From positions 186,001 through 250,000 of the forward strand of contig DF236977.1 of assembly GCA_000708835.1 (NCBI GenBank): DNA of 64,000 nucleotides, read 5' to 3'. Of this stretch, positions 14,507 through 48,800 are shown piece after piece. The stretch is from Klebsormidium nitens. Lineage: Eukaryota > Plantae > Klebsormidiophyceae. Numbering within the stretch: the first letter of the stretch is position 1; each line of letters starts with the position of its first letter. The translations under genes were made by a program, and so were the position numbers. The notes beneath the pieces were generated by a model, which searched no databases, had not been told where the DNA came from, and saw only the letters and a program-made list of their open reading frames with translations.

Positions 14507-17500
14507 ATGGGTTCCAGCTTGGTTGAAAAGGTGGTGGTCGTTTTGTTGCTTTTTGTTGGACTGGCAGCCAGCGTGAGGGTTACGAGCGAAGCGGACTCTG
14601 CTGCTCTGCCCTTTGTGATACTCCATGGTGAGCAGTACAAAACATGCCCGGAACTTGCAAGTTACACTGTCAATTGCGTCAAAGAGCTTGTATGGGCACC
14701 GATGAGTGCTGGGACACTCTGAAAAGCTGTGATGAAATTGAGTAGCAGCTGGAGCTGTCCTCTCACAGCCACAAATGAAGTGTGCACCTCAGAAAGTTTC
14801 CACAGAAAGTGGTGCAACTTGGTTCCTGCTCCACTGGCTGTCCGCCTTGGCCGCAACGTGATGCTAGTGTGTGTGGTGGCTGTGCAGGTATTGGTGATCA
14901 GTGCTCGAATCCAGGACTTGCCTCACTCACAAAAAGCCTGTCAAAATCGGCCGGCATAGAGGGCACTTGCATGTGCGTAAGTTCAATACCTGCTTTGCAG
15001 ATGGATGTAGATGTTGTGCCACCACCTATTTTGCAGTGCAAATCATCAGTTACGTCTGTCTGGAGCTGGGGCGTTTCCTGCTCTTCTCTTGGGGCTTCCT
15101 TTCAAGGTTCTGCTGACTGAATCAGTCAAACCTTCGCTTTGCAGAGAGATAGGAGACGGCGTTTCCTCCTCCTGGTTGATGCCACTATATCAACAGGTGA
15201 GTACAGACCGCAGTTCCTGAAGTTTGGGCGGCTCTGAACCTATCACTTGTTAGCCTTACCAGATTCTTCTTGTTGTGCGAGTCCTGGGCTTCTCGCAGCG
15301 ATGTGGGCAGAAAGCCTTGTCCATTGGCGAGCTCTAGTATCAGCGCAACTGAACGTAAGAAGTTGTGAGAAGCTTCTTGCGCGTACTAAGGTTTGGAGTT
15401 GCTTTATCAAACGCGATTGTTGGACACCGCTGTCTCCATCTATTATACTGGCTTAATTTCGACGCCTATGAAAGGGTAAAGCGGGTGGAATATAGTCCCT
15501 GTATTTAAAGACGGATTTAAAAGTCTTTACTTTGCCCAACCTGAGTTACAGACCATATTTTCTTTGTTGTGACCTGTGTAACTTTCGTTGCAGGTCAAAG
15601 AGGTTTGTACAAAGGTGAAAGCGCTGCCCCACCTGCAAGCTGGGTTCAATCTGGTGGGCTTTTCACAGGTAAGACTGAAACTAGCTGAGCACGGTCCCGG
15701 TATTCGAAGCGACGTTGCGCTGGAAGCGACATTCGGATGCTGCAGAGGTTTACCAGCTGAGCAGATAAACAAAGCTCTTTGTTAGGAAAGACTCTCTCTT
15801 TTCAACGTGTGCGGTTCTGAATGACGCTTACCTGTGCAGGGGAACGTCATTGGAAGAGGTTACATCGAGTGGTGTGAAGGTGGACCGCCGGCAAGTGCCG
15901 ATACACCTGCTCTCGCTCCTCCCTTTGCTACAGAAAGGGCTTCGAGCATGCATGGGGTCGAGTCAGACCTAAAGCTTCCATTCCACCAAGTAGAAAGTTG
16001 TGGAAGCAAGGAAGATTTCGAATCTTTCGTTTGAGGACGTTGCCATCGTTCAAAAGTTGACTGGTCGGCAGGAGCTCGCTCGAGATGCTACCCTTTCGTC
16101 GCCTTGACGAGTGAGCACCGATTGAGATTTGTCGTTCTGTTGGGAGCTATTTGAGTGACTCCTTTGTCTTACCCTGGCAGGTGCATAACTTCGTCTCTGT
16201 TGGAGGCCCCCACGCAGGGACGGCTGCTGTTCCTCTTTGCTATGTAAGCTCCTTTGCTGTGCTCGAGCACCTCATTGCTTGGCCGCAGTCCGTTGACATT
16301 TCTCCACCCAGCAGTTTATTATGGTAGGATTTCTCACAACTTGAACTGCGAGGTCCTTCTTATTGAGAGTCCATAGTTCGTCATCCTCGAGGCTTATGAG
16401 AATCCTTGTTTTATATCCCTGCGTTTTGACTTTCGCGACCTACTCAATGAGGAGGATGTAAGGCATCGTTTGGGATACTGTGACATCTCGATTCTCGATT
16501 GAAGTCTGCATCCGACAGCTCGTGATCTTGTTCGCTTCTGTGCAGTACTACTCTATTTGTCGACTTATCAATGACGTCATCGAGATTGGAATCTACAGCC
16601 ACTTCGTACAGACGCACATCGCCCCGACTGGATACGTCAAGATCCCAACGGTGAGCCCTTGCTGCCTTCTGAGTGATCATGCGGTTGTATGGCGTTGAAA
16701 AGTGGCGCTCTCATGTATTCCTGCGATCTTCACGCTATGACGCCCACGTCTGACTTCAGCTTCGCTGTTCTAGGACGTCCGCGGTTACTTGTCCGGATGC
16801 GAGTTCCTGCCATATCTCAACAACGAGCTGCCAAGCCACCGCAACTCGACGTACAAGGAGCGCTTCTCGGCCATCAACAAGCTCGTGCTAGTCATGGTAG
16901 GAACCGTCAACATTTCCTGAAAGTTGAGGACGCTGTTGCAGTCTTCTCTATGATCAATTGATGAAACGTTGGCACCTTCTTGCCATGCATTCATTTGCGG
17001 AATGAAGGAACCCCAAAAAGGGGAAAGGTCGCTTAACTTCACAAGATTTCTCACGCTGTAATAGTTCGCATGTAAACGAAAAGCAACTCAGAATCTTTGA
17101 GGCACTTTGCACTTGGGCTGAAGATCGATTATCCAACTTTTTCCTCTGTTCGCAGTTTGAATTAGATTCAGTCATCATCCCTAGAGAGTCTGCCTGGTTC
17201 GGGTTCTATCCAGAAGACGACATGCGGAAGGTACTAAAACCTCAGGAGGTACGAATCATCACTCGCCGCAGATCTTACTACTTGCCTGCTGGAAGGTGCT
17301 CTTTCAATTGCTTGATTCCGCCCACATCTTTTGGCTTGCATCTCATTTGCTACTCAAGGAAGCGGATTTGTGCTGACATACGTCGCCCACTTGGTTGGGT
17401 CGGCGTCATTCTCTGATTGTTCCTAAGGACCTTTGTCGGATTGCGGATCTTGGAAGATTGACACGAGCAAAAACTCATTTTGGTTTTGCTGTTGTTGCAG

Positions 17501-17755
17501 ACTGACTTGTACAAAGAGGACTGGATAGGTTTGAGGACCTTGGACGAAGCCGGCAAGGTCAGCTACGTCAGTACCCCGGGCATTCATATGCACGTGACCA
17601 GGGGTCTCGTCGATAAGTACATACTTCCGAACATTGTCCCGCCGGGTAGACGTACAACGTCAGTAGGATTTCTTAAAAGGTTGGCCTCTCTCTTGGAGAC
17701 ACAAGCTGATGAGAACGAGGTCGTGTACAGTCCCCCTGTAAAGGCAAGCCTGTAA
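14507..17755 (+). CDS. PPT1: Palmitoyl-protein thioesterase 1-like alpha/beta hydrolase with signal peptide
   Basis: Ten exons: 14507-14627, 14888-14972, 15145-15196, 15594-15668, 15840-15890, 16181-16243, 16546-16650, 16774-16896, 17156-17248, 17501-17755 (340 aa). Motifs: LPFVILHGIGDQC, nucleophile GFSQG, NFVSVGGPHAG, Asp in FELDSVIIPRESAWFGFY, LYKEDWIGLRTLDEAGK, His in PGIHM. The N-terminus is hydrophobic. Confidence 0.95.
15891..16180 (+). other. Non-canonical GC-AG intron in PPT1
   Basis: The donor is CCG|GCAAGT and the acceptor is GGCAG|GTG. Splicing here restores the conserved EGGPP|VHNFVSVGG, and no GT donor is present at that codon boundary. Confidence 0.85.
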
Positions 17756-19485
17756 GATGTCGAGGTCTATCGAGGTTAAGGAGAGAGTTTAGAACCTGCA
17801 TTTGATTAAATATTTCCGTACAAATTCGAGTGTATACTTTAATCCTGAGCTTGGAAGTCTCGATCTTTCATTCTTCGAAGCAAGTCACCAGGCTGCATGA
17901 TCGTTAGGGCTGGGCATGCAGATGCACCTTTCAAGGGTTCAAAAGCTGAAGGCGGTGAGTCTTTGATTCAGGCGTTCAAAATAGCAGCGAAAGCAACGCG
18001 TTACGTAGCGGTTGCACTGCGGTCTTTGCATCAGCGGTCCTTGAATCCATATGAAATGGGGTCAACTAAGACCCCAATCTCGAATAGACTGTGGCTTGAT
18101 TTTGACGGTCATCACGGGCTGCCAAGCTGTGCCCATCATGGGGGCCTCAATCTGCATGAGCAAAGACCCTTGTAATGGTCGAGACTCGAGGCGGCAGCAG
18201 CAGTGCAGATTGCACATGTGGGTTCTGGTGTAAATCGATTGAATTGCTTTACAGAGTGATGCACTACATGTGAAAGGTTATGCAAGACCAGATGCGTAGT
18301 TATAGTATGATCCCTCAAAACTTATGTTGACTCGCTGCCAATTGCCGCGCATGCCGGGTTAAATATAATTGCAATGGTTGGAATTGCGATTTAGGCACTG
18401 GCTCCCTGGCATGTGGTTCGATCAATGCAGATCCCATTGCGCGCTTAATTAAACCGTAGGTTGTTTCAATGCAACAATAATCCGTGGGCCTCGAAGCGTT
18501 GGGTCGGCTAACGGGCCTGAACATGTCAACCTCCATACGAGAAGACTCACCACTCTAGCCATGATCAGCTCACTTAAAAGCGATCGAAGATCGTCCAGAC
18601 TAAGGCTCAGCTGCAAATTTCCGATATCGACTCCTGTAGTCTGTTCGATGCAACGCACAGTTGTCTGGTGCCATGTGACACAGCGTTCAGTTTGAGGAAC
18701 TTTGAACAGCCTCCGAGTGCCGACATGCATGGCGCGCCAAAACTGAGCGCTTCGATTGGATAATCTTAAAAGAGACGACCTCAGTTGCGCGGCGAAGACA
18801 AGCAGACGCGAAGAGCGCTCAATAAGAATAATGTCGTCGAAGTCCGTTACGTCATTTGCTACTGCGATCCTCCCGCACCTTGCAAGACGGATAGGAAGGC
18901 GTCCTTAGAGGACTGGGAGGATTCGGGTCGCCGGCATGCAGGTCCTCCTATTGTAACGATCTTTGACGAAGTTAGCCTGAGCCCTTCAGATGCCCAGCGA
19001 CGACTTCTCCAATCGGCATTTCAGGAGCGAGACAGCGCTGGTGTTTGGCCACCATCAGGAGCTTCAGGTCGGATTCTGGTTTCAATTGGGGTCTCGGTTG
19101 GGTAAGGAAGCAAGGGAACAGGAGAGGACGAATTTCAGGAACTTGGCTTTGCTTGCGCAAAGAAGGGAGTCCGCAAAGGCGACGCAACGGTGAGTTAAAA
19201 GGTTTCTGCTTCTTCTACAACAAAGCCTCGTCAATAAGTATGATGAACGGCAGGTCAAAAGCTGATGTAAGAATCTCCTCCTCGAGCCATCCCAGGAGGT
19301 ACTTCTACACATCTGCATCCATTGCATATCCTTGTGCTTTCAGAGGATTTGATGGACCATTCTCGTTTAATGCAGCACCATTATCAGGTCAGACAGTCAA
19401 ACAGCCTTGAGAATCAGGAACTACTTCATGTAGCCTGACATTGAGTTTCTATGCTTTTCAGGTGTAAGGTCAAAAGAAGATCATC

Positions 19486-22400
19486 ATGGTTGCTGCACAC
19501 ACTCATGTTCTCGAGGGAATGGAAGCAGGCAAAAGCTCTGAAGAAGACCTCAGAGAGTTGGAGGAGGTCCTGAAGATCTTCAGGCCAGAAAGCATTCGGA
19601 CAAGGCTTCTGCTCTCGAAGGGTCTGCCAAAAGTGGAAGAGAAGACTGATTTAAGCCATTATCTCTCAGAAGAACCGCAGGAGCAGTCTCAAACTGCTGC
19701 ATGCACGTCCTTTGAGGCTGCTATTTCAAGCTTTCCCGATGGAAGATCCGACGCTGATTTGACTGCAGAACTAGCCTTCGAGCCAGTGACACCAGCAGCT
19801 TTAGCTCCACCTCCGTTCATCTTGGGCGACGAGAATCTGCCAGAAGAGCTCGCTGCAGGACAGGTGGAAGCCATTTCTGAGGGTTTGGAAGAGCAGAATT
19901 TGGAGACCCCTAGTCTAAGAAGGCCCTCTCAGACATACTCTCGAGCACAGTTGCAGGCCCTCAAGGACTCCTCAGATGCTGGGAACAACTCAAGGACGAT
20001 CCTGGGCGCGGTGGATAGGGCCAGGCTGGGAAAGTCAAACCACCCTGTGACGCCTGCCTTTATGGAAAGACTCCGGCGCAACGAAGGCGCTAGGTCCAAC
20101 GCTAGCGCGCAGGATCCGCAGGGAGGCTTTGTCAGAGGCAACAGCTTCGAAGCTTCTAGGAGCACTGCTAGCACGCAGATTCTGCAGGGAAGCTTTGGCA
20201 GAGGCAACAGCTTCGAAGTTGCTCGAAGACCGTTCAACAAGAGGGTTGCAGGTACATCTGATGCGCAGCAGGGTTCTTGGCTTCGACGTCCAGAGGAAGC
20301 CATTGGGCAGAACAACGGTGAGACACTCTTCAAATCCAGCCCTTCTGCTTACATGACCTATTTTGCTCAGGTGTTTCTGAAGAAACGAAGTCATTGGCGG
20401 GCAAATCATCTACAGAAGCATAAGTAAGGCGAGGCCTGCAATTTGCTGTCTTGATCGCTCTTTCTGCCGCTTGACTCAGAAGCTCTCACTCACCAGATTT
20501 ATATTCTAATGTTCCGGGAACAGAACTTTTGAAGGATAGAGTGTTCTTCAATTTTGTTGATTTCCATTTGCTTCAAGATATACATGACGTTCAGAATGTT
20601 AGACAAATTTACAATTTAAGTGTACCGCTGTGATCACAAATCCTCGAATCTTTACTGGAGAAGACACCACGGAAAGGCAATTCGTCTCCCCAATGCTGCT
20701 GCTTTCATTTCCTTCGATTCTGCAGCTTTGGTTTAAAATGTGATAAAACGCACAGAATTACGATGCCATGGAGGACATGTCACTTTAGAGAGTGATACAT
20801 GGCTACTGCTATCGGTGTCTGTCCTTCTGCATCTGCCATGGTGCATCTTCACATATCATCTTCGTGTACACGACTTTTGACACGCGGATCCTCCTTCTTG
20901 CAGGCATACTTGGCCTTTCTCCCAGCGATCACTTCAAGCCAGCACGTCTCGACATCCCAAGCCAGCCCACATTCGCGGACGATGACGGAGGAGACTTTGC
21001 CGATCGCGTACGGTACTTGAAGCGACGAAACACCAAGGAAGACAGCGGCCAGTTCAAGACAGGGGGTCCTGCAGTTGGCCAGGGTGTGGACAGCCCCAGC
21101 AAAACCCTAGCCGGCATCGAATTGGGGGCTCTTGACTCTTTCTTGGAGAACGGCGCTGCTCTGATGAACGCCTTTGCGACTCCCCTCTGTCAGTCTCCTC
21201 AAAATTCTGCGCGAGAGGCCCCCGAAGCCATCGGAGGAGACTCTTTCTTGGAAAAGAATACCGGGCAAAGCAGAGCAAGCGGCCAGACCGGTTCGATCGA
21301 TATCTTTCCCCAGAGTGGCTCTGGAAATGCGGCCACCAGGCAGTTCAACTTCCAACCGGAGCAAGGCGCACTTTCTCAGCATTCAAGTTTCTCGGCAGGG
21401 CGGCTCCCGTCCAAAGGCGAAACAGCAAGCGACACAGGGGCAAGCAGCGGTGCCGGAATTGCAGCAGAGCCAGAAACAGGGTTCGGAGTTTCGGAGGAGC
21501 CTGAGGAGCCTGCCGCTGGCGAAGGGGTGCAGAAGCCCGCGGAATCAAACGGCTCAGATGACGCCCTGGAGGAGCTGCTCCGACAGATGGAGAAGAATTG
21601 GAAGACGGAGCGCCCAACGCAGGCAGAGTCTGGCTGCGACCTGGCGCGCGCAGGCAGTCTGTTGGGAGGTCTCGTCCAGGAAGAGACGACGGTTCTCAGC
21701 TTCAAGGCGGTGCGTGCGTCGGCGGTGGGCCGGTCGGTGTCCCCGAGCACCGCCAGTTTTGCGAGCGAGGCGGGCAGCGCAGAGCCGCAGGACTACCTGT
21801 CAGAGCTCGACGTGGGCACTTCGGAGTCCTCTCCAATACGAGGGCAGGAGATCCTGCGCGCTTTTGGCAGCGGAAGCTTCGCGACGGGCTGGGGGCTGGA
21901 GACCCAGGGGGTGACGTCAGAGTCAGAGGTTGAGCCGGAGCCGAACACGCTGGTTGCAGAGGGAAGTGCGTCGAGACCTGAGGGTGCAAGAACCGAGGGC
22001 GACCGGAAGACAGGGATTTTGGCGGTTGAAGAATCACGATCAGAGGAGAGACCAAGATCGAGCCCCCTGAAGCGTCCGAGAAGTCCATCCCCAGAGCGAG
22101 GAGTCGGAGGTATCCGGGCATTTGCGTCCGAGCTTTTGCTCTCGGCTGACACGAACCGCGAGAAGCTGCCGGCAGTTCTTTCCCCCGGAACTTCTCTACC
22201 CGAAGGCCAGGAAACGGAGGAGAAGCCCGTCGGAAAATTGGCTCCAGAAGCCAGGCTTGACAACTCTTTGCCTCAGCCTGTCCAAGCTGCTTTCGGGGGA
22301 AGCTTGACGAGAGAACTCGGAGAGGAGCAAAGAGCAGACGGTCTGCTGGGGGGTTCGGTCATCAAAGAAGCGCCGCCCCCTTTCGTCTTCGGGGAATCAG

Positions 22401-25400
22401 CTGCAACCGGAAAGCAGAGAGAAGGAGCTGAGGGATCGGGGTTGGATTTGACTCTCGCAGCCTGGAAGAAGGATCCGGAAGACCCCCTGTCTTTCCCTGC
22501 TGGTGAGGGGCGGGAAGATGAGTCAGCGCAGGATGCGGAAGAAGACTCCCATGCTGAGAAGGGGTGGGTTTCGACTGGAGAAGGCTCGGCAGCGGGGCCG
22601 GAGGTTGCCCAAGATACAAGTGTCCCGTCTTCCGAAGTTGTGCAGCAAGTCCCGGCTTCACCGAGCAAGCACGTAAAGAGTGCTGTCGAAGCTGTGTCGC
22701 AAGCTGGGGAGTCAGAAGAAGGAGAAGGAGATAGTCGAAACCCAAGTGGCGAGAAGCTCGAGAAGCCGGGGCCAGAAGCAGACCCAAACCCTGCCGTGCC
22801 AGAAGGAAACAAAGGGCCAGCTTTGACTCTGGAAGAAGAATTAAAGCCGACAGAGCAAAAGGAAATCCTAGCTTCCAGCGCAGTCAAGGTTGAAGAAGAG
22901 CAGCTGAAAGAGCCGGGGAGAGCGGAGAAGGCGGGTGACAAGATCGGGGACAAAGGGTTCGCTTCGGCGCGCGCGACTGAGGTGAAGGCGGGTGGAGATG
23001 CTTCTGACGGCCAAGTATCACTTGCCTCCGTTCAGATCAGTGAGGAAGAGAACACAGAAGCCACGGAGGGGGAGGATGAGGCTCAGAAGCAGGTCATAAA
23101 CGGGACAAGTCTGTCGCGGGCGGTGAGAGCGGAAGAAGCGATTGCGGCTGCTGAGGAAGCTGCGGATAAGGCGGATGTGTCTCGTGATCCTGAGATTGAG
23201 GGGCAAGGGTTTGGCGTTAGCAGGAATGCGGAGGAACCAAAACACGTGGCGGAAGACGCTGGGAGCGGAGAGAAGGCGGACGGAAGAGAGGCTGAACTTA
23301 AAGGAACAGAGGAATGCAAGAACAAGGAAGTGTCAGAATGGGAAGACGTGCGAAGCAAAGAGGCGCCTGGCAGCCGAGTCGGTGAGGCGGATAACCCGCC
23401 AGCAGAAGGAGGAGCTCCTGTTCAGACCAATGAGCAGGCGCCAGGTGTCACGGAGGCAGAGCTCAAACCAGGGGAAACGTCGACGGAGTTTGGGGCGCCT
23501 GAAACCGGAGCGGGCTCGGGTGATCATGGTGACGTGGCAGGGGCAGGTTGGGGCGAGCCGGAGAAAACACCTTCTGACCAGCCTGGTGACCAGTGTTCCG
23601 CGGAAGCAGGCAATCCTGTTGAGCCGGAAAAGCCCGCGGAACCGGATGCTGGGCAGCGGAACGAGACGGAACCCGCAGTTGTATACGGAACCGAGGCAGG
23701 CGCGGCGACCGGGTGGGGCGAAGTAGCGGTGGAGGTCGCCGGGCAGCGAGAGGCATCTGTCCCTTCGCCGGTGGAGGAGGCTGGGAGTGGCTGGGAGGGC
23801 GCGCGTGGTGTTTCAGAGACATCTGGCCCGGCGGTGCTGAGGAGCTCAGGACAAATCTCCACCCGTGTCCGACCGGAGAGACCGCTTGACCAGGACGGTC
23901 CGGACACTCAGGTAATCGTCTACTTGCTATGAGAACCTCACTTTGCTAGAAGAACTTCACAAATACAGAGAGGATTCGTTATCAAGGCGTCCGAAAGAGA
24001 TGAGATTACAGTACTTGAAGATTCTCCTAAAAATCTCTGGCCGAGTTTTCAGCTGTTTGTAATTCAAATTTCACCCTTCTGTTTGCTGAAGCCTGTCTGC
24101 AAAATAAAGTTACACAATTGTGTTTTCTCATGTCCAAGTAGATCGTCAATCGAAGTCTTTTAACTCTTAATTTCAACCTTAATGTTGATGTTTTCGAATC
24201 CCTTGTTATCATCGGTTTGGTCTGGGACACTCACTGCAGCACTCAGCAGAAAAAGTTGCCACAATTCGCAATCACGTCTTTCAGATTCGCCGGCTTATGC
24301 TTTCCGATTCGCTTTCAGGCACCCCAGCCCGGTATTTTTGCGGCTTCTGCCATGGGTGAAGACGAGTGGACCATTCCCGTCGAGCCAGAGCCCGTACCCA
24401 CCCGCTCCTCGTTCCGCAAGCGCCCCTCTGAGTGGAAGGCAGAAGTCGACAGCCAGCCCTTCGAGAAGCCCCTGCCGCTGGCCGACGTCGTAAAGGCCGT
24501 CTCCAAGGCCCCGTTCCCGGAGGAGTCCATCATCAGCTCAGAGGGCGGCAATGGCTGGAGCTCGCCAGAGACGTCTCGACTCGACGAAGAACTGGGGAAG
24601 GAGGAGAGACCGGCGCGCACAGAAGGCTTCGCCCAAGATGCAAAAGAGAGACCGGATCCGAGTCTTTCGGAGTGGCAGAACGGCGGTGAGGCAACCCTTT
24701 CGATACTTGGGGTCTTTTGCGGGTTGTATTGCTTCTTTCTCAAGACTTACGGTCTCTTGAGCAGATTTTCTATCTGAGGAGCAGCCTTGACAACTTTGGA
24801 AGAGAACATAAAACAATACATGAAAATTGAAAGATCACGAAGACAGAAAGCTTGTTGATTTCATTGAAGAGGAGACAGATTGAGTAATCTCAGAATTGAT
24901 CAAGTCTGAGACGATATTCGGATCAATAACTTCGGGAAGCTTGTCAGAACCGGTGGTTAAGAGACTGGCTTGCTTGCGGGTCCCTTAATAATATGTCTTG
25001 GCTTTCACCTCCCGAGCCTGCAAACCAAACACACTTGGAAGTCTAATGAGGCTTCAGAAGCGTTTTTAAACCAGCATTAGACAGGTGAGACTCTATTTTC
25101 AAAATTCTGAACCAGTGAGGATCTTCCCCCAGGTACCGATGGAAAGTCTGCAGGCCTCGAGGAAGCTCCCGAAGGTCAAGCTACCGGCTGGAGCGCTTCC
25201 CCGGCATCGCCCCCCTTGCTTCTCAGCTCGGCAACTCCTCCCGGGCTGCAACCACCGGTACCTCCATCCACCCCTGCCTCCTCCGAGACCAGCCAAGTAG
25301 GCGCCCGGGTGGACGGGACCGACCAGCCAACTCTGCCCCCAGTTTCTGTGGCGAAAGAAGCACCGGGAGAGGAGTTCGAGGCCACGGGGTGGGGAGAACC

Positions 25401-28275
25401 AGTCGGGAGTCCGCAAGCGCCGGTCAGCGAGGCGTCCTTCTCCTCTGCAAAGAGCACGCCTTTCTCGGATGAGGCCAGACCCGCGGCGGCATACACCGAG
25501 CCGGCAGAGACCGTGGAAGCGTTCGAAGGCCCTCCGCAAGCGGATGAGGAGGCAGTGGGGTGGGGAGAACCTGCGCCCTCCGCTCGCTCTCGCCCAATGA
25601 TCCCCATTCCGCAGCCCCTCCCTGCGAAGCCGTTTGACTTGGAGAAGTCCACCGGGCTCCCTCCGCCGACGTTCGCCACCAGCCCTGCTCCCGCAGCGCC
25701 AACCGAGGAGATCACCGCCACCGGGTGGGGCGACGCACCGACAGAAGAAGCGGACTCTGACGGGAGGCCAGCGCCAGAGACAGGCTTTGGAGCGAGCGAG
25801 GCGGCTCCGATGGGTTGGGGGGAAGCCCCAGCGGCGACAGGTTTTGGCGACCAGCAGCCCGTGAGCCCACAGCCTCCGTCGCCCATGAGGCCCGTCGGGC
25901 CTGCCCCCGGATTTTCGACAAAGCCGGCCCCCCGCACGCCCCCCGGGTTTGCTTCTAAGCCCCAGTTCAGCACGTCGCAGGCCGCGAAGCCGCTCAAAGC
26001 GAAGCCGACGCTGGACGAGATCTACGCCAAGGTGTCGGTCGTGCCGAAGGTCGAGGGCGCGACAGGCTGGAACGCGTCGACGGACGTGCAGGAAGACGAG
26101 CCCGCTGAGTATGAAGCGCCCGGTTGGCCTGCCCCGGGAAGCCAGAACGCTCCAACGTCCCCGGAGGCTGCCCCAGCTCGGTCGGGTGTGGACAACCGGT
26201 CGGGGAGCTACCAGCGCGAGACCGGCTGGAGCGCGGCTGGCGACTACCGCTCCGTTCAGGCCTCGGATGATGCTCCCCCCCACCACGAAACAGTTGAGAA
26301 CCGGTCTGTTGGCAGCATTCCCCGAGCGTACCAGCCCGAGATGAGACCGGAAAGTCCGCCCCCCCGGTTCGTCCATCACGACGTGCGTGCCCCGCTCCCT
26401 TACAACCCGGTCATGGAGCAGGCGCGGCCGCGTGCCGCCAGACCCGCGCGCGCGACTCTGCCGGAGCTCCCCGCGGGCTGCATCCCGGCTGCCCGGTTCT
26501 TCCCGTCCCCAGTCGACACCGCGGCCGCCCAGAGCGCGCTGGCGTCAGAGCGCGGAGGCGCCTCGCGCATGCTGATGTCAGCGCTCAAGAGCGCGGTGAC
26601 GAACAATAGTGCGGGCAGGCAGGGCGGGACGGGTAGAGAGGAGGGCTTCGCCGGGAGGAGCGGAGCGGTCGGAAGCGGAATCACCGGAAGCGGAATCACA
26701 GGAGGCCCCAGGAAGTATGCGCCACCCTTGAGTACGGATTACCAGCGGCCGACGTCGGCGGAGTCCAGCGAGGGGCGGTGGGTGCACGACAAGTTCATGG
26801 AGATGCATGGGGAAGAGACCGGCAGAAGGGCCCAGGGGAAAGCACCGGGCGCGTACATGCCGTTTGGGAAGGCGCCGGCCAGCCAAGCAAGTGGGCCAGC
26901 AGACGGGCCGCGCACGAGGGGAACGAAGGACGAGGACCCGATTGCTGAGAAGTGGGGCGGCTTTGCGGAGAAGCAGGAGACTGGTGGTCATGACGGGGGC
27001 ATCAAGGTCTGGGACTGGGACAGTGACAGCGACGAGAAGCAGAGGGAGGTGCAGCAGGCGGAGGGCGGGGTTCTGGGAGAGAGACCACGATTTGGTGGTT
27101 GCGAGAGACTCAACATCGAAGGTGAGCCGGAGTGTTATATTGATCGAGTACTGTGAACTCCGTCGTTTTCTGCTGGTCCTCATACGCTGAGACCATGCTC
27201 AGAGCGAAGTGAGTTTCGTGAAGCTTATTGGTGGCTGCAAAAAGTTTGAAGAGCTTCAACTGAATCTACTCAGCAGTATCAAAATTCTGTTGCTTCTGGG
27301 TCCGAGGGCCGCTATGAGACAGAACCAATTTGATGGACCTTCGATTCATTTCATGATGCTCTTGTTCTCACTGTCATTTTCTAAGCCTCAGGACGAATCT
27401 TGCCTTCCACTGATCAATTGTGCTGCAACTTTGCAGGGCTGAAGCCGTACGAGCCAGAAGACGACGACTCCGTGTCCTCCCAGCCCTCCGCTCCCCCGCT
27501 TCCCCAGCAGAAGGCCAGAACCACTTCAAACCCTCAGCAGTCGTCCGGAGCAAGCGCACCGCGGCCGCGCTTCGCGCGCGACAAGAAGGTGGACGAAGCG
27601 CTCGCGGCCTGGCAGGCGTGGGGGGGAGCCGGCAGCGAGCCCGACCCGTTCGCGGAGGCGGAAGCCAAGTACGGACCGGGACCTCCAGCCAGGCAGCCGA
27701 AGCCCGCTCCACCTACCCGGGAGAAGCCAATCGGGCCGAGACGCGCGACCCCACCCGCAGTAACAGAGCCCCCCCCTCCGACCAAGGCCCCGGTGCGCGC
27801 GGTGTACCCCCCCGGGAGCAGCGGCAGCCTCGCCGCGCAGACGCTCAAGCTGCCTGAGAGATCGCCGTCGTCCTCGGTGGTAAGCCCCGAGCCGCGATAC
27901 AAGCGCGACGCGAAAGTGGAAGAGGCGCTGTCCGCGTGGAAGGCTCTGGGAACCGACCCCAACGAACCGGACCCCTTTGAGGAAGCAGCTCGCAAGTACG
28001 GAACAGAGCCCGCCCCAAAGCCGAAGCTCAAGCCGAGCATCGTGCCTGCGCAGCGTCCCGCGCCACCGGCCAGGATCCCCGCTCCCGCAAAACCTGTCCC
28101 TGCGGCGCAACCCCCCCCGGCAAAGAGCACCCCGGTAGCGGCGGCTCCTTCGAATGGACCTGTGCGATTTGGACGAGACCCAAAGGTGGACGAAGCGCTG
28201 GCGGCGTGGAAGAATCTAGGCGGTGCTGATGAGCCAGATCCGTTTGAGGAGATAGAGCGGAGGAATCGATATTGA
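19486..28275 (+). CDS. Very large acidic, low-complexity protein (at least 2,344 aa) with GW/WG repeats, a WxHDKF motif and three C-terminal 36-aa repeats; function unknown
   Basis: In-phase exons 19486-20317, 20904-23911, 24319-24685, 25133-27121, 27437-28275 (7035 nt). Upstream exons near 18800-19470 are possible but unresolved. The protein is rich in E/A/G/P/S, and no folded domain was recognised except the terminal repeats. Confidence 0.8.
20101..20223 (+). repeat. Imperfect in-frame 66-nt tandem duplication (22-aa period; QGGFVRGNSFEA / QGSFGRGNSFEV)
   Basis: 20101-20157 and 20167-20223 share CAGAGGCAACAGCTTCGAAG exactly. Confidence 0.85.
27568..28272 (+). repeat. Three protein-level repeats, consensus R[FY]xRDxKV[DE]EALxAWxx[WL]GxxxxEPDPFxE
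   Basis: Copies at 27568-27675, 27895-28002 and 28165-28272, separated by Pro-rich linkers. Confidence 0.9.
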
Positions 28276-44986: not shown

Positions 44987-45893
44987 GCTTCCACCTATGC
45001 TGTACATTAGTACTTACGTTTCAACGAAGAGGGCCTCTTCCTTGGAGTCCCTGATCTTTTACCCTCCACTCGTAAAACCGTCGTTTTCGCCAACCTTATC
45101 CAACCCAAGCAATCTTCGTAATCAATCATAGCATCTCTGCAAGCGCAACCATAGAAGTCAGGTCTCCGGCAGACTCCGCTGCCAACGCTACTAGAAGTGG
45201 CAGCGCAAGTCTTTTGCCCATGTGGACCTGAAACAGCAGGCCATGGTGAAAGTCGGGGGTGCTTCAATCGGACAATTTCAAAAGTTCGCAATTCGTCGAG
45301 TACCGTAAGTTTGGACGTCTCGGAGTCCTTGTGCGACTCAATCGAACGGTACTCCTTGCGTGTGCCGTTGACCTCCTTGAACCGGATCGTTGGACCGCTC
45401 CTGAGACGAAGACCATGACAACCGTCCGATATCTTTACAAATTGCACGGCCTGGAATCTTACGCGCGCACGCGCGCCTGGCCGTTCGTCTTGCGTGGCCC
45501 GGCCGCCGGTCGGCCCTTTCTTGCGCGCGCAGAGTGAATTCTGCTTTCTGGTAGCCTGAGCCTGAGGTACCCATCTCCACGCAATGTAATTTGCAGGACA
45601 TATCAGGCTCTTATCTTCTGTACCTTCAAGATTCAACCACTGCCCAGTCCTTGATATGTACTGTAGTTGCACTGTGCATTTGACCTCAACTTCTGGAACA
45701 CGAACCTAGAGAGCACAAGAGCAGCTAAGAAATGCAGGCGATAAGCAGCTCGGACAAGGACCCACAGCTAGGCTAACGCTACGTCAGGGCGACCGTCCCA
45801 GTCCAAGCTCAGCTACGACAATCAGGTACCTTATGAATCGAGTGGTCTTCTGAGCCATTGGTGCCGCACTCAAGCGAGCGGGTTCCAAGCTCA
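44987..45893. promoter_or_regulatory. Divergent intergenic region shared by KNL1 and the DZIP1-like gene
   Basis: The starts are about 0.9 kb apart and head-to-head. A GC-rich core with GCGCGC and GGCC/GGCCC runs lies at 45461-45530. Promoter function is inferred. Confidence 0.4.
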
Positions 45894-48800
45894 ATGGGCC
45901 GCTCTACAGGCGGCGTGACGGGCCAGTGGGATGGCGAGGTGCGGCCCCTTGCTTCGCAGCGTCGGAGCCGGGGCACCACAAAATGGGGCACCAGGAACCC
46001 TAAAAGCATGGGGCAGGTGGATTTCTTGAACGGCACGAGCAAGTCGTTTGGTCGGCAGAAGTCGGGCGTGGAGTTTGGCAACAATATGACCAAGATTCTA
46101 GGGCAGGAAGAAGATGGATGGGTGTCCAGCAGCAGCCCGAGCGATGATGAGCTGGCATATGGCACCAGGCCTAGGAACACCATCCCCAGAGCTACCTCCA
46201 TGCCTGCCCAGCCGGGGACCATGGATTTTGACATGGAGAGCAGGCTGATGGCCACTGTGGCTGGGACGACTGCGCCGTTCATGTTTGAGAAGAGGAGGAC
46301 GCGCATTGACTGGAGGAAGCTGCATGGAATCGATGTTGATAGGGTCATCAGGGAGGCAGGTGAGCTAAAGCAATTTTACCATGTCAAAAAGCAAAGGACA
46401 GCTATCAAAGTATGTACGATCTGCTCGCTCAGCTCCTCAAGAGCAGATGAGCTTTTTTTGCACGGCCCAACTTCGAGCTCACCATCGAAACAGCTGGCAT
46501 TGTTCAACTCCAGGCACAGAAACCATGGTGTTTATTCCAAATATGGCCTCCCTTTCTGCTTGCAGATATCGACACTCTCGAGTCTATCCTCGACACCATT
46601 GCATTTGGGGACATTGAGGCAGAAGACACCCGGAACTTCACAGAGTTCAACTTTGTCAAGATCTTCCGGCTCTCTCAGCTCATGGCAAGTTTACATCCGC
46701 TACTTCAAAGCTCCTGCCTTTCCGTAGCTCCTTAAATTGCCAGTGTTTGATCACATACACACATTCATATCACCACTGCTGCACTCCATCAGCAAAGCTC
46801 ATGGTAAGAAACTTGAACACGGTCAAACAGTGGCAGAAAGTTTTGTTGTATGCATTTGTACTTGAGGCACCACTGGGCACCTGGAGCAGTCTCAGGGCCC
46901 ACTTTAATCCATCTCTTTTTTCGGTGCAGGTTGAGTACTTGCTCCATGTCCAGGAGACGCTGGCCTCGCACAAGAGTCAGCTGGTGGTGGCTGGGGCCAC
47001 TGTCCAGAGAAAGACACAGAAGCTGCACAGCACTGTGTCGTGGCACAGAGATGCGCTGGCAGCCACGCGGCGAGATCTGAAGCAGGCCAAGAAGGTAGGG
47101 AGCTTGACTCAAAGGCCAGTTGATGATCTTTTAAGCATTACGGGCAGCAACATGAAATTGCAGGAGAGGTGGATCTTGATAAACAAAGCTGACTTTTTAA
47201 GTGCGATGAGGAAAGCCGTTAAGATTGAAAGCAAGGAACTTGATAGTGGCAACAAGTGCTCATAGACATGAGGGTGGCTGTTACGAGGACGAGGTACTGG
47301 GCATTGAGTGATTATTGAGATTGAAAAAAGTCGAGGTGCTCAGGGAGTGAGGGATATTGGAAGCTTGTCAATGTGTACCAGCTGTGTGAAGAATTGTAGT
47401 CATGAGCAGTGGCAACTTTCTCAATACTTTAGCCTCATAAAAAGCTTATGCACGGAACCGTCTGACTTTGCCCACTGGTTTGCAGACATTGTCCACCTAC
47501 GAGATCCTGCTCCGCCTGCATGGCCATGGGCAGGGCCCCGCCCCCTCCAGCCAGCAGACCCACAAGTGCCCCACCTGCGACAAGCTCTTTGAGTCTGCCT
47601 ACTACCTGGTGAGTTGCGAGCAAGTTGCCAAGGATCGCTGCAAAAGCATTGACAAAATACCTTGTCAGGGCACTTTGATAGCTGTGGGCTGATCCCTGCA
47701 ATATTGTAAGAACGATCGGTGTTGCTTGCACTGCAAAGAAGCCCAATTGATGACAGATTCAAGCCTCCAATGTTGCCGGTATGGAAAGGCTGGGTTTGAA
47801 GTGCCTTTGTTTGGCGCGCAGGACCTGCACATGGCGCGCAGGCATCCCCGCCCGCCAGAGGAAGACCCGAAGGCCATCCTGGCAGCCGCGGTCGCAAAAG
47901 CAGAGGAGATGACCACCATCAAGGTGCGCAGACTTGAGTGTTGTCAGGAAGACCGCTGTGTAGGTCGTGCAAAAGATGTTGCGGGGGCAAGCTTGTGCTG
48001 ATACCAGGTTCGGGAGCCCCCAACTTTGCTGAAGTCTTTGAGAGTCTCCCAAGACGAAAGGACGTCATGGAACGCCGAAAAATGAAGGGTCAGACTTAGC
48101 TAATATCGGATCGGCCTCAATTCGCAGGTCCGGGCCGAGACGACGGCCCAGCTGCAGGCAGAGTTCCAGGAGGTGCTAGCGCGCACGAGAACAGACTTTG
48201 AGAGGGCGGAGCAAGCAGCCAACACCAAGGTGAGGCACGAGGCTCCCCGCAGCTTTCAGCAACTGGTTGGCGGGTCGCACAAAGCGGCAATGAACCAGGG
48301 CCTGCACCTCAGACCGGGCGGGTTGTTTGAGGACTTGGCTACTATCCTGTAAGCTCATTTTTTACGTCAATAGCAGGAACAAATGCAGGGATTGAGAGGC
48401 CTTCTGAATCTTTTTGTTCTTCTAGAGACGTACATCCCGGCAGTCGTACCATCCGGCCTGTGCAGTGCATTAAGCTCCTGGACCCTGCCATCGTCCTTTT
48501 CAAAGGTGTTGGAAAGAATCTTCTGTCCTGCTCGAAACTAGTCTTATAATGTAGAGAACTGATTCCCAGGTCCTGAAACGTTGTCTCTAAACGTTGCCTG
48601 GCTTCTGCCCTTCTAGGTGGTGTCCCTCCAAGCCGTGCTCGCGAGCCGCGAGCGCGAGATGGAGGACCTCCGCGCACGCATCGAGGAGCTGCAGCGCGCG
48701 GCGGCGCGGCGCACGGGCGCGGGCGCGCGCCTCGAAGAGGACGACCCCGAGGCGGCGCACGCGGCCGGCCTGCGCGTCCGCGAGCTGGAAGGGAAGGTGG

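Follow-up and report, generated by a model that had tools for sequence, protein, structure and literature searches.

Does the alga Klebsormidium nitens possess a scaffold protein that could hold Argonaute by its tryptophans? To our knowledge no GW182 orthologue exists in the green lineage, and the recruitment of translational repressors by Argonaute in plants and algae is poorly understood. Argonaute (AGO) hooks are tryptophans that lie in disordered sequence and have small or acidic residues as neighbours (PMC2910046), and AGO-hook proteins have been documented in Klebsormidiophyceae (PMC10991848). We analysed a stretch of 64,000 nucleotides of K. nitens DNA (the window), in which an earlier note had flagged the interval 21887-27625 as encoding a giant disordered protein with many Gly-Trp (GW) motifs and had proposed it as a candidate Argonaute-hook scaffold.

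The modules quoted in that note are carried by four long open reading frames of the + strand, and a fifth conserved frame lies upstream of them (19468-20424). A word search with exon 4 identified four orthologous open reading frame products on contigs from metagenome and Logan assemblies (L001 to L004). The gene is syntenic in these four related algal contigs, and five conserved reading-frame blocks occur in identical order in the window and in all four loci. L002 represents a close relative, with 61-85% protein identity, and L001, L003 and L004 a distant clade (the far clade), with 29-54% identity. From GT-AG sites of compatible phase we modelled a gene of five exons on the + strand, running from 19486 to 28275 and comprising about 2,344 codons and a stop, which extends beyond the flagged interval. 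The dN/dS ratio against L002 lies between 0.20 and 0.53 per exon. Judged by these comparisons, this is a real multi-exon gene, conserved in related algae.

Exon 1 (19486-20317; 277 codons and 1 nt) holds no Pfam domain, shares 77% identity with L002 and 37% with the far clade, and ends at a donor, G^GT(G/A)AGA (the caret marks the junction), that aligns across all five loci. Exon 2 (20904-23911; about 1,002 codons), whose acceptor CAG^G is likewise common to the five loci, encodes an acidic disordered region. Its 3' end (donor 23912) and the start of exon 3 are supported by L002 only. For exon 3 (24319-24685) comparison with L002 gave the acceptor TTTCAG^GCA at 24319, and our first choice, 24247, was dropped after this comparison. 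The junction between exons 3 and 4 is conserved, with small shifts between loci. Exon 4 (25133-27121; 662 codons) contains an array of GW motifs and, downstream of it, a series of short conserved motifs; its donor, G^GT(G/A)AG, keeps its position and phase in five of five loci, as does the exon 5 acceptor. Exon 5 (27437-28275) encodes three repeats of about 37 residues in Pro-rich linkers and closes with the stop codon at 28273-28275.

The last 37 or so codons of exon 2 (23800-23911) are nearly identical to L002, with one identical run of 26 residues, and are missing from L001, in contrast to the remainder of the exon, which is only 64% identical to L002; either this tail is under constraint as a motif or the exon truly ends elsewhere. 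A basic K-R-P-R patch in the same exon (22130-22160) resembles a classical nuclear localisation signal, but it is kept in L002 and not in the far clade and therefore says nothing about localisation. Exon 3 contains a block of about 70 residues (24355-24570) that scarcely differs between clades whose identity elsewhere is only 29-50%, with an invariant GW at its end; it matches no known family and probably binds a partner.

The spliced model contains 29 Trp residues, with 14 GW, 9 WG, 7 GWG and 7 TGW. Within 21887-27625 fall 25 of the Trp and all of the GW: five in exon 2 (W codons at 21890, 22565, 23549, 23714 and 23792), one in exon 3 (24556) and eight in the hook array of exon 4 (25186-26229; W at 25189, 25390, 25561, 25726, 25816, 26068, 26125 and 26227). 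Two extra WG have their W at 26953 and 27619. The earlier note had counted 14 GW among about 29 Trp, 7 GWG and two further WG, and the spliced model returns identical figures; the nine versions of a recurring module that it quoted were all located in their places. The excess of GW is not due to chance. At a Gly frequency of 0.10, the number of Trp preceded by Gly has a binomial P of 2e-7, and none of 20,000 shuffles attained the observed GW, GWG or TGW counts. In the other long open reading frames of the window 5 of 41 Trp belong to GW, against 14 of 29 here (Fisher P = 0.001). The background was indeed acidic and poor in aromatics, as first described (D+E 372 against K+R 238; aromatics 4.9%), and G, S, E, A, P, D, T, K, Q and R make up 79% of the residues. 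Small or acidic residues (T, A, G, S, E, D) adjoin the Trp, and the linkers between hooks are rich in E, P and A, not in G, S and N.

Comparison of the orthologues indicated which of these motifs are maintained. Across the five orthologues Trp is conserved better than any other residue type: it scores 0.90 in L002, where residues overall score 0.72, and 0.69 in the far clade, where they score 0.41. The far clade retains 10 of the 14 GW, including those of exon 2 at 21890 and 23714; the motifs lost are at 22565, 23549, 23792 and 26227, with L003 still showing a Trp (D-W-G) at 23792. Around Trp, positions -3 to +1 are identical to the far clade at 0.64, versus 0.35 for the flanks. Their consensus reads [A/T]-T-G-W-G/S, in many cases with an acidic residue after it, and 8-9 of the 10 GW motifs of the far clade are TGW. 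It is thus supported by sequence conservation that the GW motifs behave like selected short linear motifs. In the exon 4 array the far clade retains 7 of the 8 GW. The successive gaps measure 67/57/55/30/84/19/34 residues in the window versus 78/63/53/50/101/22 in the far clade. The order of the hooks and, roughly, their spacing hold across clades, and every gap is at least 19 residues long. The four related loci keep the motif, and the spacing, whose loss in related species the earlier note had named as evidence against its proposal, is approximately preserved.

Three copies of a 38-nt module, 171 and 165 nt apart (DNA repeat family D2), lie in the array, and a fourth lies in exon 2. They look like what is left of a tandem repeat, about 56 residues long, whose decay would have spared the hook core alone, and NRPE1 platforms have been described likewise, as decayed repeats keeping the hook core (PMC4476159). 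Hook residues account for 3.0% of a 1,164-residue span and for 5.5% of 25135-26232, the initial 366 residues of exon 4; both values fall inside the span published for NRPE1 platforms, from <2.5% to >10% (PMC4476159). The hook-rich exon 4 is predicted to be disordered: AlphaFold2, run on the five-sequence alignment, gave a mean pLDDT of 40.3 and a pTM of 0.17, with few short helices only.

A GW/WG predictor, which the earlier note had suggested as a check, gave a divided answer. We used our own implementation of the Karlowski 2010 WG/GW scoring matrix (dec 8.6, threshold 6.99 half-bits); the published criteria are dos >= 6.99 and ics <= 2.14, and the Arabidopsis domains measure 92-654 aa (Karlowski 2010). 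The protein has 13 seeds at dos >= 6.99, against a shuffle maximum of 10, and this was the sole score above the shuffles. No platform of 92-654 aa emerged, but fragments of 3-56 aa only, and the maximum dos of 15.6 lies within the shuffle range (95th percentile 21.8). The E/P/A-rich linkers are penalised by this matrix. The proposal of an Argonaute-hook scaffold is supported in part: by the conserved gene, its predicted disorder, its selected GW motifs and its NRPE1-range hook share, with a divided result under the 2010 matrix.

We tentatively favour, with rather less than even confidence, the reading of this protein as a convergent, domain-free functional analogue of animal GW182/TNRC6, and not as a homologue. 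It would be a scaffold protein confined to Klebsormidium-type algae and disordered over almost its entire length; in it, at least 10 conserved [A/T]-T-G-W-G/S motifs, 19-120 residues apart in acidic flexible sequence, would serve as tryptophan hooks; all of its binding partners are those that we infer from the motifs. The hooks would insert into the Trp pockets of an Argonaute PIWI domain, so that one molecule could hold several Argonautes. Bridging pockets needs a linker of at least about 10 residues between hooks. The PIWI domain has three Trp pockets (PMC12477606), and the hook gaps of at least 19 residues are compatible with bridging them. It counts against the hook reading that the Trp2 pocket of plant AGO may be blocked (PMC12477606).

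Just after the densest hooks, and adjoining them, lies a tandem P-P/A-G-F pair (PPGF/APGF; 25903-25950, + strand) of the PPG-hydrophobic type, which is a GYF-domain ligand; TNRC6 recruits GIGYF-4EHP via PPGL (PMC10187677). The orthologues keep both positions, except that R replaces G at the second in one far-clade taxon. By count the PPG-hydrophobic pattern shows no enrichment, with 2 occurrences against about 0.5 expected. The conserved pair supports a putative GW182-like docking scaffold, in which the tandem PPGF motifs may recruit a GYF-domain translational repressor, and conserved C-terminal motifs together with the three helical repeats of exon 5 may bind additional partners.

We searched for relatives of the protein beyond the four loci, one exon at a time; structure predictions likewise covered single exons, and the joined protein served for the residue and motif counts. 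A profile of exon 4 compared with 1.84 billion representative proteins found two Klebsormidium-like open reading frames and one spurious repetitive protein. Word searches with exon 4, an exon 5 profile and the N-terminus of exon 2 returned the same loci only, and two scans of metagenome contigs gave no further relatives. Pfam searches of all five exons and the orthologues gave nothing beyond a sub-threshold Btz match and a Dicer_dimer match at noise level (E = 0.18, one of five orthologues). UBA and RRM domains were found in no exon by Pfam, nor was any host domain of the known platforms (RNA polymerase core, DeCL, NGN-KOW, SPT6 core, helicase, PHD, BAH; E <= 1-10, five exons), and no orthologue contained a PAM2-like pattern. 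Sequence and profile searches of the PDB gave no meaningful match, and Rfam had none within the 64-kb window. In the ESM Atlas the head of exon 2 retrieved FG-nucleoporin-like disordered look-alikes at a chance-level score of 0.81, and exon 5 retrieved nothing. By these searches the family is restricted to Klebsormidium-like algae and is devoid of any recognisable folded domain. Since its relatives occur only in such algae and no Pfam domain is present, the protein is not GW182, NRPE1, SPT5L, SPT6L, SDE3, NERD, SUO or CASC3, and the exhaustive exon 4 profile search bears out the earlier statement that it has no homology to GW182, NRPE1, SPT5L or SDE3.

The protein nevertheless resembles several of these systems in its organisation. 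Like GW182/TNRC6 it is long, disordered and multivalent, with dispersed GW hooks in small or acidic flanks and a PPG-hydrophobic GYF ligand; it differs in having no sequence homology, UBA, RRM, PAM2 or Q-rich region, and in a C-terminal triple helical repeat that is unique to the algal protein. The taxon also differs, GW182 being an animal family (PMC4615383). With the NRPE1 C-terminal domain, SPT5L, SPT6L, SDE3, NERD and SUO it shares reiterated GW/GWG in disordered sequence and, with NRPE1, the decayed tandem repeat and the hook density. Unlike these plant platforms, it is attached to no host enzyme or chromatin domain, its hooks are sparser, and its linkers are of another composition.

The same restriction to Klebsormidium-like algae and the same lack of folded domains would also be expected of a disordered scaffold outside RNA silencing, whose Trp motifs bind a lineage-specific partner or act as aromatic stickers in a condensate. 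The language-model look-alikes, FG-nucleoporin-like only and at chance level, fit such a protein, and so does the motif itself: the extended form A-T-G-W-G-E-P is unusually specific, whereas most platforms conserve WG/GW only, which could mean a different, specific reader. However, the motif context matches the hook preferences of AGO and NOT, the conserved PPGF pair is a known docking motif of RNA regulators (PMC10187677), and a pure sticker role would not keep T-G-W-G so precisely. We regard a role outside silencing as unlikely, while granting it appreciable weight.

It is improbable, in our estimate, that the Trp motifs are instead effector motifs docking on pockets of CCR4-NOT (CAF40/NOT9, NOT1) or PAN3, the protein then being a scaffold for mRNA decay or repression that is targeted without AGO. 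The enrichment of GW, their conservation and the motif core fit this equally well, and in GW182 the GW repeats serve as effector motifs and bind to CCR4-NOT (PMC2965232, PMC10991848). The PPGF pair and the weak Btz-like motif described below both suggest mRNA-associated partners. On the other hand, Pfam finds an RNA-binding or targeting domain in no exon, and the pockets of AGO and CAF40 are indistinguishable from sequence alone.

The favoured GW182-like scaffold would bind its additional partners through the C-terminal part of the protein. There, K-W-G-G-F and acidic W-D-x-D-S-D motifs (26950-27036, + strand) are conserved in the alignment; K-W-G-G-F resembles a gamma-ear ligand and W-D-W-D-S-D an acidic Trp motif of the COPI or Arp2/3 type. 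The three repeats of exon 5 (about 27562-27675, 27892-28002 and 28159-28272, + strand; DNA repeat family D1) are predicted to form helix-turn-helix units about 37 aa long, and every unit carries an invariant Trp and a D-P-F. The repeats hardly vary among the five orthologues, their helices reach an AlphaFold2 pLDDT of 70-80, and searches of Pfam and the ESM Atlas and the profile word search gave no relatives outside the same loci. Three invariant DPF, one W-G-G-F of the gamma-ear type and one acidic W-D-W-D could be read as ligands of adaptor appendage or COPI domains and the protein as an accessory of vesicle traffic. This reading is weak because NPF, FxDxF and the clathrin box are absent from all orthologues and because all three DPF lie inside the predicted helices of a structured repeat and not in free linker; GW hooks, moreover, are not a known adaptor ligand. 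We consider it very unlikely.

Upstream of these motifs, R-W-V-H-D-K-F/W (26776-26796, + strand) is invariant in the five orthologues and weakly resembles the eIF4A3-binding segment of CASC3/Btz. The Pfam Btz profile (PF09405) matches with E = 0.0025 and 18.4 bits, below the cut-off of 22, over positions 84-114 of 131 and in one of five orthologues. A divergent CASC3/Barentsz-type protein of the exon junction complex, binding an eIF4A3-like helicase through this motif, would share with CASC3/MLN51/Barentsz the mostly disordered sequence and the R-W-x-H-D-K-F motif, but it is hardly credible, given a single short motif that stays under the Pfam threshold, a SELOR domain of which nothing else was found, and PDB profile and sequence searches that gave no CASC3 chain. 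A broader extension of the GW182 analogue is also doubtful: hooks, the GYF-ligand pair and a Btz-like motif binding a DEAD-box helicase would be combined on one all-disordered protein, itself part of a genome-wide T-G-W hook code that would wire RNA-surveillance proteins (ASCC2, SGS3 and a KH protein) to Argonaute.

The protein is a new, lineage-restricted candidate, by its sequence features, for the known functional class of AGO-hook scaffolds. A conserved scaffold consisting of hooks only, with a GYF-ligand pair, would be a compact object on which to test how Argonaute recruits a repressor, in a streptophyte alga that is tractable and stands close to the base of the lineage of land plants. 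What limits its value is the confinement of the family to Klebsormidium-like algae and the putative nature of its partners. Elsewhere in the window, the open reading frame at 45837-46724 has a weak Dzip-like_N match (E = 3e-5, below the cut-off). The upstream neighbour of the five-exon gene, at 17006-17752, encodes a palmitoyl-protein thioesterase (Pfam PF02089, E = 1e-7) and is syntenic in L001 and L002.
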